Shown here: piece after piece, positions 41,782-47,647 of the stretch
Layout: each line of letters begins with the position of its first letter
Position numbering within the stretch: position 1 is the stretch's first letter
Origin: Pelomyxa schiedti
Lineage: Eukaryota > Protista > Evosea
Direction of reading: 5' to 3'
Assembly (NCBI GenBank): GCA_020536535.1
Contig: JAHLWZ010000835.1
Location: 25,562 to 89,561, forward strand
Length of the DNA stretch: 64,000 nucleotides
Made by a program: the position numbers and the translations under genes
The notes under the pieces: generated by a model
Seen by the model: the letters and a program-made list of their open reading frames with translations, nothing else
The model's database searches: none
What the model was told of the DNA's origin: nothing

Positions 41782-43987
41782 ATGACAGCGGCGGTTGCAA
41801 CGCAGCAGCAACAGCGAGCGGTGCAAGCCGTTCGTAGTGCTGTGCGTGTTGATGAGTTCGGAGATCTTGTTGGTGTTTCGTCGGCGACGCTGTCCATTGC
41901 GCAAAACGTGGCCCGGATCTATCGCGAATCTACGTGCAAATGGTTCCGCAGTAACATTCCACTGTCGCCGCCACAACCTAGTTCTTCGACTTCATCAGCA
42001 TCTACGACACCAGCAACGCCAAGCGCAACGAGTGTCGCTCCAAGGGTATTTGCCAGCCTCCCTGTAGATACGCAAGTGTGTTGTTTTCTTTTTTATTCCA
42101 AGTGTTGTAACTCATTCCAGAAAGCAGTGTTCAACGAGGGTTGTTCCCTTGTCATACGACTGAGCGTCGCATCTTTCCTTGCATCGGAGCGCTTGAAGGT
42201 TTGCTATATCACCTTCTTGCTTTTCCTCTTGTACCTACTTTCTAACATCCTTAGGCGAACACTGTGATTCAAATATTGGTCCGGCATCTAGTCGATACTT
42301 TCAACCGAACACCTGCATTATTGACAGATAACATGTTACATGCCCACTTTCAAGACGTTGTCCTGTTCCTTATTTCCCAACTCTTCCACCTCAGCACTTC
42401 GCCCCATTCAGTTCTTGGGTGCGCCCCAAATTCCCAATCTCCACAACACCGCACCACTCCACTCTCACCCCCGCAAGTTCTAGCAGAAAAGCCCTTGGTA
42501 TTGCTGCAGTGGTGCTTGGCAATTCTTGCACTAGCAGAGAATGGTTACTCCAAGCATGAAAGGTACTTCACTGCCTGTCTGAAGCATCTAGATGTCTGTC
42601 TGCGTTCCTGTGTCCCCAGACTTCGTGTGTAAAGGTTTCTAAACGCAAATAACTTATTATTCTTCAGGTGATTTTTATTTGGTTGTAGCACAACAAAGTT
42701 TGAGTAAAGTGCACTTGCTCCACGCACGTCACATTATATATAATGGAGGTGACATTATACGTGATGCCAGACCACTGCTTTGTGCGGCCAAAGACACTTT
42801 GCAAACATTGATAAAACAACCTGGTCAACAGTGCGCAATCAATTTATGAATGGTTTGTCTTTTTAACAACTACTTCAAGTGTCCCACAGGCCTGCTATTA
42901 TTTGGCCAGGGCTTGCGTTCTACTTGGAGAAATAGAGATTGCCCGCTCCGTACTTCAAGATGCAGCCACCGTAATGCACCTAAATGTTATCCTTCACTGA
43001 GAACTATCTCCAGAAGAAAATTCTGCCAGAACCCAAAGAACTATTGTCTGAACCTGATTTTGAATCAATACGTGATGCACCTTGGTTTGCTGCAATATGT
43101 GGCATTCAGCCCCCAGCACCAAACCAACTGTCACCAAATACTGAATATACCATGCTCAAGTCGTCTCTGATGGGGGGTGGATTTTCTGTTAAGAAGATGA
43201 TAGACCATTTGATAAAGCCTGGTCATTTAAAGTACATTGAATGTTAAAAAATACTGACGCTTCTCCAGTAATGCCAACAGCCTTGAAAGAGTGCGGGCAA
43301 GTTTTAACCGCGAGACAACGACTGGCAGCCAGGCTGGCTATGTACCAACTGAAGTAATTGCCTGTTGATTCACCCAAACATTTCTCTAATCACATCTTAC
43401 AGGGAGAGGAGAGACATTCCTGGTGATGGGAACTGTCAGTTCTATTCCTTATCTGATCAGATGTACGACACAATACACAGGGTATCCATGTAGCATCCCA
43501 GTCCTTTTTAGTAAGTTCCTTCAGGCAGCGGATCTACGTCGCACTGCTGTCGCATGGCTTGAAGCCCACAAGGAATGGGATCCCGGCAATGGTGCTTTAC
43601 TACATTACTTTGTTGCTGATCAGACATGGGAGGCGTATTGCAGACAAATGTCAAAATCAGGTTCACTCCTTCTACTCCTCCATTGTTTGACAGTGAAAAA
43701 TGTAGGCACTTGGGGGGATAATTTGACTTTGATTGCGATATCAGAACACTTCCGTGTCCGAATAAGTGTAATTTCCAGTGTAGCTGGTGACAACTTTATT
43801 ACTGGTATGGACAGTTCCTTTCGAAGAGACCTAAAAAACGTGTAGAGATTACCCCAAGTGCTCTAAAAGGAGACCCCACAACCAAAGTTTTGCTCCTGTG
43901 CCACTTCGCGGTTTGTTCCTTGCTGTTTTCTTCACTGTTCTTATCTTCCAACAGGAGTACCACTACGGGAGCCTCGGCTCAGTGTGA
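41782..43987 (+). CDS. OTU-family deubiquitinase with helical N-terminal region
   Basis: DIPGDGNCQFYSLSDQMY (Cys box); WEAYCRQMSKS|GTWGDNLTLIA; CHFA|EYHYGSL (His box). Stop at 43985-43987. Confidence 0.85.
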
Positions 43988-44075
43988 CCGCACCAAATGT
44001 GAAAATATTCCTTGTTGTAGGACCAAAAGGAAAACGGATTTTAATACACCACATTCTTTTGTTTTTGGTGGAATG

Positions 44076-46213
44076 TTAGCCAGCAAGCTTCCTCTTGGCC
44101 CAGGCTGAGGCCGGTGTTTGCCAATAGCCTCTTCCCCACATGGCATCAGCCTTGGGCCACCCAGTCGTCATTTTAGTGCCACAGTCTTTGCCAAGGGCAG
44201 CGAGGGTAAGGCCATTGATTACGAAGGAGTGGTCTGTGACCTGTGTGTGTGGATTGAGTGTGGTGAATGGATTAGTGGTGATGGAGTTGGGTGGGCCCGG
44301 TTGTTGTGTTGTGTGTACCTCGGGGCCTCCTTCGAGCTCAAAGTTGTAGAGTCTGTCGATGTACATCTTCTGTAGAGTGCCAATCTCGAAAGGGTGCACC
44401 CACTCATTTCTTACCAGAACGGGGTGCCCAGGAGTAAGAGCCAGACCAGATAAAATCACCATGCTCTTCTCACACTGTGTCTCTAGAACTTCTACACGGG
44501 CAATGGCCCTAGGGGTACCTAGTTCTGTCAAGACAAGATCACCAACTTCAATGTGCTCAACTTTCCTGTAGGAAAATCAGCCTCAGAGGAAAGACAGTTA
44601 TTTATGACGGGGGACATTACTTGAGGGAGTTGTCTGCCATAAGAACGTCTCCATCTCCGGTAAAGCATGAAGGAACACCGGGAGCTTCGACTTCTGTCTT
44701 CATTGTGGCATCAACTTGCAGCCAACGGCGGAGAATTTCTTGCCTTGCTGCCTCTCGTTCTTGTGGAACTTTGCAGACAAACATTCCATAGCCGCACAAT
44801 CCAAAGGCACGGTTGTGGAGATCTCTTTTGAGTTTATTGTCACGTTCTACGTGAAGTGAGATGTTTAGGCTAGGTGAAGGCGGGAAACGGACCTATCACT
44901 TTAGGGTCTGAGAGCAGGAGCAGCTCCAAAGCATGGAAGGTTGTCGTTATTAAACGGAAGCCAGAAGGTTTTGCGTTTATGTTCACACCAGCTTTTGCAC
45001 AAAAGCATATAGCTACTTCTTCAGGGATTGTGCGTGTGTTTAAGTCGGGTATTGGAGTATGAAAGCGACTGTGAACAAGTGAGACATTGCACAATGTGGT
45101 GACTGCTTCGTCAACGTAAAACTATAAGGACAAAATAGTGAGAGGAGGGAGGTGGAAGTATTTCAATTGTAAAACCTGTCCTGTATGGCACGTACATTTG
45201 CAATACGAAAGCAAACTTGTGAGTATATTTACTAAAACGTCATTTGGCATCATAAGTAGTAGACATCTGAAGGCAAGTTGGATTTTACAAAAAACCATCG
45301 AACTTACTCATCTGCGGGCGGCGTTTCAGCAGGGTGTGTGAACTGCGTTAGTCCATATCTACATGAGGGCACTGGAGGGATAGTAAAGGGTCTTATCTTG
45401 TGTCCAGTGTATCTTAATTTTGTTAAACTGAGGCGGAATCCACACTAAAGGAGCACTAGGAACCGTATTTTGCGGACATTCCCACTGGTATGGTTTCGCT
45501 GAGTCATTGACAATAAGTTGACTGTGCGATTACCACTAGAAAGCTTAACTCTGGCTGCATCCATTCTGTTCATATTGTTGCTCTCCAGGAACTGTTCCAA
45601 AAGAGTACAATCCTATCAAAGTGAGTAAAGTGGCTGGAATTTTGGAGAAGAGAAGTACAGAAGGTTCAAATGGGTACCATCGGTCACCCATCCACCACCA
45701 CTGGGGCCCTAGCTCCTCAGGGAGGGGCTTGCGTGCAGCAGTGCTTGTGGTGCTTGTAGTTGTAGAACTTGAGGTACCAGTGCGAGAAGGAATGATGTGT
45801 AATCGAATTTGAAGGTCCTGCATAGGCCTTTTAGAGTTGTCCAGTTCTCTCAAAGTGACTTCATACTCCCCAAGCCTAAACAGAGGGAAACTTGCTGATT
45901 CACCAACAGGCACTAGCAATACAATTTTTTTTTTTTTTTTTGTCATACAAATGTGTTGGCTTTTAAAGACTCTCAATAAAATGAAGAATAAACGAGTACC
46001 TTCTGTCACAACGGTTCCAGAAGTTGGAAACGCACATGAAGCGATCCACTGGGTTATATCGACTCAGTGTCAGCCACAATTATGGGAGGCGGAAAAAAAA
46101 GGGTACAAAAACGGTAGAATTACCCTGGCCCTCGACACCACTGAAAGTGGCGTCGTCCTCAAGTGCTGAATTTCAATGGTTTTCCCTGGAGGTGGTCGCC
46201 ACGGCCTCGACAT
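44076..46213 (-). CDS. Beta-sandwich(?) + WWE + F-box + C-terminal Hint (Vint-type) domain protein
   Basis: Continuous frame through canonical introns: WWWMGDRWYPFEPS|DCTLLEQF...RTVNLLSMTQRNHTSGNVRKIR (WWE); LLLMMPNDVLVNILTSL...LCNVSLVHSRF (F-box); PS-CFTGDGDVLMADNSLK|KVEHIEVGDLV...LTPGHPVL...LYNFEL...HSFVING (Hint blocks A, B, F). Confidence 0.8.
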
Positions 46214-46392
46214 TTCAACTGTTTTGTAAAATTAAACGACTTCGAGGAAATTTTTTTTTTTCGATCTCATTTTTGGTTGTAGTAGGGCACAGATTCCCAC
46301 CGCCTACCACAACACCATTGTGAGTGCATCATAGGAACTGGAGGAAGTGTATGAGATAGCTGGCAAGAAAGAAAAAGGCACCATAGCCACAA

Positions 46393-47647
46393 CTACCGTG
46401 TGCTGTGTGGGAGTAAGTTTTGATAAAGATAATAGAGGTAAGGGAAGTTACATGTAGGAATGGCAAAACTGGTGGGGGTGAGGGGTATAAGCAAGCTCAG
46501 GATTAGGGCTAGAAGCCAGAAATGGTGATTTCTGCAGAGAGTGGCACAATTCCAGCAAAATGTAAAAGCTGCGTGGATTGTGGCAATGATGGCCATGTAG
46601 TTGGTGCCGAAGATCAGTGTGCACCCACACACGATTGGGGATAAGACGGGAATCACCGGCTGAGCTCTACAACTTAGGTTCCCGGTGCCTGATAATACAA
46701 GCATCCCCAGAGAACGGATAGGGCATACAACTAGTGGGATGCACAAAATAGAAAGTGCAGTTTGGAAAAGCATCTAGATGTAGACTAAGTGTCATAAACA
46801 ATTGACTGTAACTCTACCTTTACAGCCACAGAAATATAGCCTGGCTCTCTGTAATTAAGAAGGTGCATCTGAGAATTAATGTACAAAGTATACAATACAG
46901 TCACACCAGCTAGGTCTGAAAAAAAAAAAGTTAGAGGTGGCAATTTCTAGTTGTAGTATTATTGTAGACTTTACCCTAATATCAAGTGGACTCACATGGA
47001 ACAATCACATTGATAGTGAGTATGCGCCCACAGCAAATAGAACAAAAAGATTCCATCGATGTCCCATAATTCAGTTCCACAGAACGCGAAATACCTCTGC
47101 CACTGCACGTCAGTGCTCGCGCCAAAGCCACAAATGTAACTGCCAGCCAAATAAATCCCCAGATGACCGTTTCTTTCTGCACATTCCTTCTAACACGCTC
47201 TCTCAAGTACACACTCTAATTTTGTTTTAGGTTTAGTGTTTATGCAGTTGCACTACAAATCAGATTAAACAAACAAACGAACAACCATAAATAAGGGCAC
47301 CATTAAAAACTCCAGCACCAAAGTGCAGCGTACATCAAGTTAACAGCTCGGGTTATTCCCGTAATTCACACCTTGTGAATCTCTTCAGGGTGCCTCACAA
47401 GCCACACCAGCATCTCAGTCAATCTCTCCCTCGTAGCCTTCTGCGTAGCCCCTTCGCACTCCTCCAAAGTCACTACCGCCCTCCTTTTTACGCCCAAATT
47501 CGCCGTGCACGTAGTCGCGCTGCCACACAATTGTGGGACCTCCCCAGCATTCACGCAACCCGCAACAGGTGCATTCCCATCTCCCTGCGCCTCCTCCTTG
47601 TCCATTTCCTCCAACGCATCCAGTAGATCTTGATCAATGTCAACCAT
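46393..47647 (-). CDS. Hypothetical membrane protein
   Basis: MVDIDQDLLDALEE start followed by several hydrophobic segments (VIWGFIWLAVTFVALA; LFQTALSILCIPLVV; TLIFGTNYMAIIATIHAAFTF). Exon joins unresolved. Confidence 0.35.

Follow-up and report, generated by a model that had tools for sequence, protein, structure and literature searches.

Three settings are known for Hint domains in eukaryotes: inteins, hedgehog/Hog proteins, and proteins combining VWA and Vint domains. Vint proteins were defined by VWA and Vwaint domains located upstream of the Hint domain, and some of them also carry a U-box (Burglin 2008, PMC2362128). A 64,000-nucleotide stretch of the genome of Pelomyxa schiedti (accession no. 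JAHLWZ010000835.1 in assembly GCA_020536535.1, positions 25,562 to 89,561 of the forward strand; hereafter the window, numbered from its first letter) contains a minus-strand gene at 44076-46213 whose predicted product, P0125, combines a WWE domain, a divergent F-box-like segment and a C-terminal Hint domain of the Vint type. We consider it somewhat probable (roughly 0.6) that the product of this gene acts as a cytosolic substrate adaptor of an SCF (Skp1-cullin-F-box) ubiquitin ligase and is synthesised in the form of a self-processing precursor.

P0125 resembles classical Vint proteins in the subtype of its Hint domain, in the presence of the first-residue cysteine (Cys1) and the TxxH motif, and in the terminal position of the Hint domain, with neither a C-extein nor a terminal Asn in either case. 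Both are predicted to be intracellular protist proteins, and both can be linked to a ubiquitin-ligase (E3) module, a U-box there and a probable F-box here. In contrast, P0125 generated no match to VWA or Vwaint, whereas the classical Vint protein P0074 has both together with a U-box, and the C-terminal tail reads LGKDCG..GWP..D..G.GYW in P0125 and LGH....H.yFG..L in classical Vint proteins. Hedgehog HhC and BIL2 share with P0125 the Hint fold and the Cys1 and TxxH residues of thioester chemistry; their thioester is resolved by transfer, to cholesterol and to lysine, respectively. P0125 differs from hedgehog HhC in lacking a signal peptide and a sterol-recognition region, and from BIL2 in lacking the C-terminal Asn and C-extein.

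On the ubiquitin-ligase side, the canonical F-box substrate receptors used for comparison were Cdc4/Fbw7, FBXO31, FBXO3, Skp2 and beta-TrCP. The F-box-like segment of P0125 has a helix 1 of the LPxE-hydrophobic type and helices 2-3 of the LCxLxLVCxRF type; the modelled three-helix module and linker helices superpose on Skp1-bound Cdc4, FBXO31, FBXO3, Fbs2, Fbw7 and beta-TrCP, and a protein-recognition module is present in the same polypeptide. Unlike these receptors, P0125 has the reversed domain order, a 17-20 residue insert with a CxCxCH motif, and a C-terminal Hint domain. WWE E3 ligases (RNF146, Deltex, HUWE1 and TRIP12) likewise join WWE to a ubiquitin-ligase module, but this module is a RING or HECT domain instead of the probable F-box of P0125, and the TRIP12-type Tyr is missing in P0125.

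Gene model and domain order

The gene consists of 10 exons with a 1605-nt coding sequence of 534 codons, starting with ATG at 46213 and ending with TAA at 44078-44076. Its nine introns are 41-87 nt long and all are of the GT..AG type; 7.43 introns per gene and 98.4% GT-AG introns were reported for the P. schiedti genome (PMC8887013), in a paper that makes no mention of Hint, F-box or ubiquitin. The model we built was identical at 534/534 residues to the public entry P0125, 'hypothetical protein Pelo_12169 [Pelomyxa schiedti]', and the public gene call on the contig covers the same 2138 bp span. A preliminary description of this DNA had read a single frame through canonical GT-AG introns from WWE through an F-box to a C-terminal Hint domain; this architecture holds, the model being that of Pelo_12169. 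No signal peptide or hydrophobic N-terminus was found in the P0125 sequence, and an intracellular role therefore fits. The features of the gene, all on the minus strand, are as follows.

46213-46124, 46048-46000, 45912-45659, 45612-45464, 45412-45308, minus strand: exons 1-5
45266-45176, 45121-44893, 44846-44621, 44565-44319, 44240-44076, minus strand: exons 6-10
45412-45703, minus strand: WWE domain, residues 117-181, interrupted by introns 45613-45658 and 45413-45463
45413-45463, minus strand: intron 4, 51 nt, GT..AG, joining the WWE exon to the linker/F-box exons
45352-45363, minus strand: CxYG motif, C198-G201, in the linker between WWE and F-box (from the WWE-class alignment)
45050-45309, minus strand: F-box-like domain, residues 216-270, interrupted by introns 45267-45307 and 45122-45175
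44686-45049, minus strand: helical linker, residues 271-376, holding intron 44847-44892
44181-44667, minus strand: Hint core, Vint type, residues 383-500, interrupted by introns 44566-44620 and 44241-44318, both spliced in RNA
44665-44667, minus strand: TGC codon of Cys383, Hint residue 1, in the context VPS/CFTGDG, with the predicted scissile bond S382/C383
44424-44435, minus strand: block B, T442-P-G-H445, the TxxH motif
44079-44180, minus strand: C-terminal tail, residues 501-534, after LGKDC500, with GWPK.D and GRGYW

The Hint, WWE and F-box-like domains

The Hint domain was identified by Pfam (Vint, PF14623, 72.7 bits, E 4e-20, cut-off 27) over residues 382-500. A whole-protein AlphaFold2 (AF2) model was built on a 69-sequence family alignment; its predicted local distance difference test score (pLDDT) was above 90 in the Hint domain and about 90 in the WWE domain, and residues 1-113 and 188-208 were of low confidence. 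In a Foldseek search against PDB, the top match of the Hint domain was the Vint domain of Tetrahymena thermophila (8r2c; E 1.4e-8, root-mean-square deviation 1.8 A over 127 columns, 28% identity), followed by the BIL2 domain of the Tetrahymena BUBL1 locus, many inteins, and hedgehog HhC. The same structure, 8r2c, was recovered by phmmer against PDB (E 6.9e-8). In alignments, C383 falls on Cys1 of the PI-SceI intein and on the first position of the Vint profile. The domain contains LYNFELEGGP..DHSFVING and continues into the tail ALGKDCG..GWPK..GRGYW; the protein ends 14 residues past GYW with GRGYWQTPASAWAKRKLAG, followed by the stop codon, and P0125 has neither a His-Asn terminus nor a C-extein. 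The tail LGKDCG..GWP..D..G.GYW, located beyond the matched portion of the Pfam profile, is specific to the F-box-linked subfamily, as against LGH....H.yFG in VWA-Vwaint-Vint proteins. The preliminary description had called a Vint domain with Cys1 at 44665-44667 (PS/CFTG), a TxxH block B, a block F, no terminal His-Asn, and a GRGYW tail; each of these is present as stated, the TGC codon encodes a residue that is Cys in 69/69 relatives, and the Vint call agrees with both the Pfam score and the top PDB match.

Conservation was counted in the 69-sequence alignment, whose members are relatives at 20-55% identity. Four positions are invariant (69/69), namely C383 (Cys1), H445 of block B, P446 and W453. 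T442 and D407 are each conserved in 68/69, followed by G497 (66/69), G516 (64/69), L496 (63/69), H484 (61/69), W520 (59/69) and C500 (45/69). The position preceding Cys1 varies widely (G, P, S, A, K, Y and others). With no change at C383 and H445 and a single exception at T442 among relatives this diverged, the residues of the acyl shift appear to be under selection. This conservation fits an N-S acyl shift, and the selection argues for catalysis. Two other assignments of the Hint domain were rejected. An intein or BIL identity would call for a C-terminal His-Asn (or Asn) and a C-extein nucleophile, which P0125 lacks. The hedgehog/Hog profile (PF01079) scored 15.2 bits, below its cut-off of 29.7, and P0125 has a non-hydrophobic N-terminus and an unrelated tail.

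The WWE domain scored 39.6 bits in Pfam (PF02825, E 7.2e-10, cut-off 21.1) when the whole of P0125 was searched, and in Foldseek against PDB it matched HUWE1 (6pfl) and TRIP12 (9bkr and 9bks) with template-modelling scores by target of 0.71-0.77. The HUWE1 and TRIP12 structures matched are complexes with ADP-ribose (ADPR), ATP or ADP. P0125 retains the Trp-rich start, along with the M.Q Gln and the R.IR Arg; the ligand-binding residues of WWE considered here follow work on RNF146. Matches of the WWE piece to CEACAM in phmmer against PDB came from a short LSSGNRTV..L stretch and were disregarded as spurious. The domain had been called in the preliminary description as well, and the Pfam score above threshold and the HUWE1/TRIP12 fold match bear the call out; the bounds given there, ~45460-45705, were close to the span found here, 45412-45703, which runs over two introns. 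Residues 1-113 of P0125 (45715-46213), upstream of the WWE domain, generated no Pfam match and have low AF2 confidence. They contain a motif, (F/Y)PL...G..(L/V)G.L.E(L/I), common to WWE-class homologs and followed by a Ser/Thr-rich stretch, and may form a small unrecognised domain.

The F-box-like segment is the weakest of the domain calls. Its helix 1 is LLLMMPNDVLVNILTSLL and its helices 2-3 are TTLCNVSLVHSRF, with the motif LCNVSLVHSRF; the 17-20 aa insert between helices 1 and 2 holds CKCTCH (45202-45185; C238-H243). Paralogs with Hint domains of the same clade carry a Pfam-significant F-box at the equivalent place (50 bits in P0039, 40 in P0011, 38 in P0025 and 36 in P0024, with P0019 also significant), and the ortholog-class protein P0004 scored 17.8 bits with Pfam F-box, below the cut-off of 24.3. 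When the WWE-class segment was compared with the Pfam-verified F-boxes of Kelch-class paralogs by hhalign, the match (E 9.7e-4, probability 22%) covered helix 1 and helices 2-3 across the insert, and MAFFT aligned the segment with the paralogs' Pfam-verified F-boxes across the insert as well. The top three matches in a PDB profile search with the segment were FBXL5 and Skp2, at non-significant E values of 0.2-0.7. With language-model (Atlas) features of residues 210-300, about 90 of 100 named clusters were F-box families (top score 0.89); the same search with the exon after the F-box was uninformative.

A separate AF2 model of residues 208-382 (pLDDT 86.7) was compared with 48,161 representative PDB chains using VIA-align. 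The sole matches with Z>=5 were Cdc4 (6.0), FBXO31 (5.3) and FBXO3 (5.0), all in Skp1 complexes, though a Z of 5-6 is 'middling' by the tool's own scale. Fbs2, Fbw7, beta-TrCP and FBXO42 were also in the top 15, and all of these matches lie over model residues ~5-112. The VIA-align matches are strikingly enriched in F-box proteins, though the Z values are modest. On this profile and model evidence, the P0125 segment is quite probably an F-box. The helical linker that follows is conserved across the family at the motifs IPEE.A..C, (L/W)..LL..DPKV and ER..A...I..RW..D; its AF2 helices have pLDDT values of 80-97, and the VIA-align F-box matches reach the first of them.

In the WWE class, the CxYG motif lies ~40 residues upstream of the conserved CxCxCH insert. 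The insert is present in P0017, P0022, P0027 and P0126, and both insert and CxYG motif are missing in P0016. The residues C198, C238, C240, C242 and H243 of the two motifs could form a metal-binding site.

The precursor reading and its alternatives

If P0125 is a self-processing SCF adaptor, the N-terminal WWE domain would act as the recognition module, its ligand being probably, by analogy with other WWE domains, an ADP-ribose-type mark on the target protein, and the divergent F-box with its CxCxCH insert would dock on Skp1. Cys383, aided by Thr442 and His445, would attack the Ser382-Cys383 peptide bond in an N-to-S acyl shift that leaves a thioester, and the thioester would then be resolved by water or another nucleophile. 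The products would be a 382-residue WWE-F-box adaptor and a 152-residue Hint fragment. A ligand of the C-terminal tail may regulate cleavage. Protein splicing is impossible because nothing follows the Hint domain and there is no terminal Asn; since there is no C-extein, the outcome would be limited to cleavage or transfer. Binding to Skp1, binding to ADP-ribose, and the actual cleavage and its purpose are steps that we infer.

Several observations weigh against this reading. Within the Hint domain, the match to the Vint profile covers positions 1-117 of 166 and leaves the C-terminal third (118-166) unmatched, and cleavage is so far a prediction for every member of the F-box-linked subfamily. 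In the WWE domain, the Tyr aligned with TRIP12 'vYTIDF', the adenine-stacking Tyr, has no obvious equivalent, and the WWE ligand is uncertain for this reason. For the F-box, the Pfam models (PF00646 / PF12937) generated no match on P0125 even at E<=1, and an exon-by-exon Pfam scan found Vint and WWE but not the F-box; Foldseek searches of the F-box/linker model against PDB and AlphaFold-SwissProt gave only non-significant helical-repeat matches, and the VIA-align scores are the middling ones given above. The F-box named in the preliminary description is backed by paralog profile comparison, VIA-align and language-model features while Pfam is blind to it, and its bounds of 45170-45280 were narrower than the span found here for the F-box-like segment, 45050-45309 over two introns. 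The domain order is unusual for an F-box protein: the recognition module precedes the F-box, and the place normally held by the substrate-binding domain is taken by the Hint domain. The RNA evidence, which consists of contigs with >=99% identity to the region from four single-cell transcriptome runs of one sample, includes no contig over 45336-46303 (WWE and 5′ exons), and one contig (run X3) has a cDNA 5′ end at 45313, inside exon 5, preceded by GTACATGGG.

The alternative that survives best keeps the thioester but changes its fate. It would be attacked by a specific nucleophile, for instance a lipid, some other small molecule or a lysine on a second protein, and the WWE-F-box part would become covalently attached through its new C-terminus with no use of ATP. 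Such transfers have precedents, since hedgehog HhC passes its N-fragment to cholesterol and BIL2 of the BUBL locus, the second-best structural match of the P0125 Hint domain, conjugates a ubiquitin-like domain to lysines without ATP (PMC8616854). P0125 also has its own conserved tail, GWP..D..G.GYW, where Hog/Vint domains have an adduct-recognition region, and the subfamily-specific Cys500 (45/69) is reminiscent of C143, the hedgehog residue that engages in a branched thioester (PMC12054796), although this likeness is by position only. However, there is no known acceptor, an equivalent of hedgehog Asp46 is not conserved ~45 residues past Cys1, and the variable residue ahead of Cys1 is unlike the Gly-Cys of hedgehog; we consider self-ligation of this adaptor unlikely. 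The wider proposal, that F-box-Vint proteins in general are self-conjugating SCF adaptors whose thioester is passed to a partner lysine, another nucleophile or a lipid without ATP or E1/E2 enzymes, seems a little less likely still; possible partners would be the substrate held by the WWE or Kelch module, or an SCF subunit.

It is likewise distinctly improbable that the Hint domain is inactive and stays attached as a binding or regulatory module. It is placed exactly where canonical F-box proteins carry WD40, LRR (leucine-rich repeat) or Kelch domains, that is, at the usual position of the substrate-binding domain; its tail is unlike that of classical Vint proteins, and cleavage in this family is so far a prediction. 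Degenerate Hint domains, however, normally lose Cys1 or block-B residues. An invariant Cys1 and block-B His, and a near-invariant Thr, across 69 diverged relatives and at least 25 paralogs would be hard to explain without catalysis.

A further alternative concerns the gene itself. The WWE exon reads into an in-frame TAG at 45445-45447, and the WWE part could end there as one product, with a separate or internal transcript from ~45313 giving an F-box-Hint product from Met220. The missing RNA contigs over 45336-46303 and the X3 contig that ends at 45313, preceded by the template-switch oligo tail of a cDNA 5′ end, would favour such a division. Intron 4 removes that TAG. After this 51-nt intron the window reads VRKIR followed by YTGHKIRPFTIPPVPSCRYG (YTGHKIRPF..VPSCRYG), which matches the junction of homolog P0008, RRIRYVGSDTKIRPY..LPKCLYG, and other homologs; P0008 reads RRIRYVGSDTKIRPYLPPTLPKCLYG. 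Alternative WWE-to-F-box introns of 33, 72, 105 and 114 nt were rejected in favour of the 51-nt intron because the latter reproduces the RIRY.G...RP junction of the homologs. An RP...VP.C.YG linker is kept between WWE and F-box in all WWE-class homologs, and the 46 codons upstream of the F-box are therefore taken to be coding. P0004 and P0014 are complete open reading frames in Trinity transcripts of Mastigella eilhardi, with WWE and Vint in one frame; P0004 adds a weak F-box-like match, and WWE, F-box-like and Vint parts share one reading frame in the homologs. Given that the 46-codon stretch is conserved coding sequence, that splicing out the 51-nt GT-AG intron puts the sequence back in frame exactly and gives the homologs' RIRY.G junction, that the NCBI model uses the identical intron 4 join and equals the built model, that Mastigella cDNAs join WWE and Vint, and that two out-of-frame ATGs would precede Met220 in a transcript starting at 45313, we regard two separate products as very improbable. 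That the WWE exons and the F-box share one gene holds on homology, including the single-frame Mastigella cDNAs.

The single-gene model of the precursor was also compared with the RNA contigs downstream. The Hint gene is expressed: the contigs cover the F-box exon and every Hint exon, and join them on one transcript. Introns 44241-44318, 44566-44620, 44847-44892 and 45122-45175 are skipped exactly, including the 78-nt intron, which is in frame and stop-free and is nonetheless spliced; intron 45267-45307 was confirmed by one contig with an anchor of just 6 nt (AGATGA, 45313-45308). An RNA check of splicing had been proposed in the preliminary description, and it thus bears out the five downstream introns and leaves the WWE and 5′ exons without contigs. 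We take GTACATGGG to be the 3′ end of the Smart-seq template-switch oligo. Smart-seq2 is the protocol cited in the methods of the P. schiedti genome paper (PMC8887013). The 5′ end at 45313 is probably that of a truncated cDNA, and an internal start there giving an F-box-Hint-only product is less likely.

Two other genes flank the Hint gene in the window. On the plus strand at ~42000-44054, a 566-aa gene with an OTU domain (deubiquitinase-type) is convergent with it; their RNA contigs overlap by ~10-15 nt at 44039-44054, and the OTU gene introns 43481-43523, 43659-43703, 43804-43844 and 43910-43953 are spliced in RNA. On the minus strand, a separate upstream transcript (46306-46975) has spliced introns at 46403-46451, 46774-46817 and 46916-46974 and ends near 46306, ~90 nt ahead of the Hint gene ATG. 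A C-to-T difference at 46622, in the region of this transcript, was seen in run X4.

Family, distribution and significance

An exhaustive phmmer search with the Hint exons against 1.84 billion representative proteins found 120 relatives at E<=1e-3, including 37 at E<=1e-10, and the Hint domain is the last domain in all 120. By source names, the relatives are overwhelmingly P. schiedti paralogs (at least 25 named proteins); the others are from Mastigella eilhardi, transcripts of Pelomyxa sp. JSP, one Trimastix marina protein (P0030; F-box-like, 26.2 bits, with Vint) and a few unlabelled environmental contigs. Judging from the proteins searched, the family is restricted to Archamoebae and a few other anaerobic protists. 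A word-indexed search recovered only itself and one paralog for P0125 and only itself for P0030, which reflects the limits of the word index and is not evidence of absence. Fold searches of AlphaFold clusters and the ESM Atlas with the whole model gave Hint proteins only, with no clear further F-box-Hint architectures. The following architectures were found among the relatives.

WWE-F-box-Vint: P0125, P0001, P0008, P0004, P0014 and P0016
Kelch-F-box-Vint and Ras-Kelch-F-box-Vint: seen among the relatives
Fic-Ras-Kelch-F-box-Vint: P0127 of P. schiedti, 1075 aa, with an AMPylase-type Fic domain and a Kelch propeller
WD40-...-Vint: P0017
Ankyrin-...-Vint: P0126
Second Hint class: P0005, P0006, P0007, P0010, P0012, P0018, P0033 and P0131, from Pelomyxa and Mastigella

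Members of the second Hint class have Hint domains of the same clade and a conserved N-terminal module with the motif LCG.H.R.G..SPL..L..d.l..I that generated no Pfam match; the likeness of this module to the F-box is a helix-1-like match of its last part only (hhalign E 6e-4 against the WWE class and 0.036 against verified F-boxes). In a maximum-likelihood tree of Hint regions (quick search with midpoint root), all Archamoebae F-box-linked Hints formed one clade of 35 rows with a Shimodaira-Hasegawa-like approximate likelihood ratio test (SH-aLRT) value of 96, separate from the classical Vint clade. Within the tree the Kelch class was monophyletic (93), and the WWE class was not resolved as one group.

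To our knowledge, and from a literature search, no WWE-F-box protein has been described. Searches of the literature that combined Vint or Hint with F-box or WWE returned only Burglin 2008 (PMC2362128) and unrelated papers. The sequences are not new, as the proteins are public with automatic Pfam labels; what appears to be undescribed is the F-box-Vint architecture, together with its expansion in Archamoebae and the separate Hint subfamily. The preliminary description did not recognise the architecture; the proteins were already public as hypothetical proteins, with at least 25 paralogs in the P. schiedti genome.

F-box-Vint proteins represent a fourth eukaryotic setting for Hint domains, in which a Vint-type Hint lies at the C-terminus of F-box adaptors whose recognition modules (WWE, Kelch, Ras-Kelch, Fic-Ras-Kelch, WD40 and ankyrin) are interchangeable. 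Vint is repeatedly paired with E3 modules, U-box and F-box, and this suggests that Vint processing and ubiquitin ligases are functionally linked in general. Being small and confined to few lineages, the family has limited breadth but offers a clean set for comparison. If the Hint domain is active, these proteins would be SCF adaptors matured, switched or covalently tethered by built-in protein-splicing chemistry; we know of no described precedent for a Hint-processed SCF adaptor. If self-conjugation were true, it would be a new way to wire or localise a cullin-RING ligase, comparable to BIL2 in Tetrahymena and to cholesterol transfer in hedgehog. In P0125 and its WWE-class homologs, the combination of WWE and F-box would provide an undescribed route from ADP-ribosylation to cullin-RING ubiquitylation.

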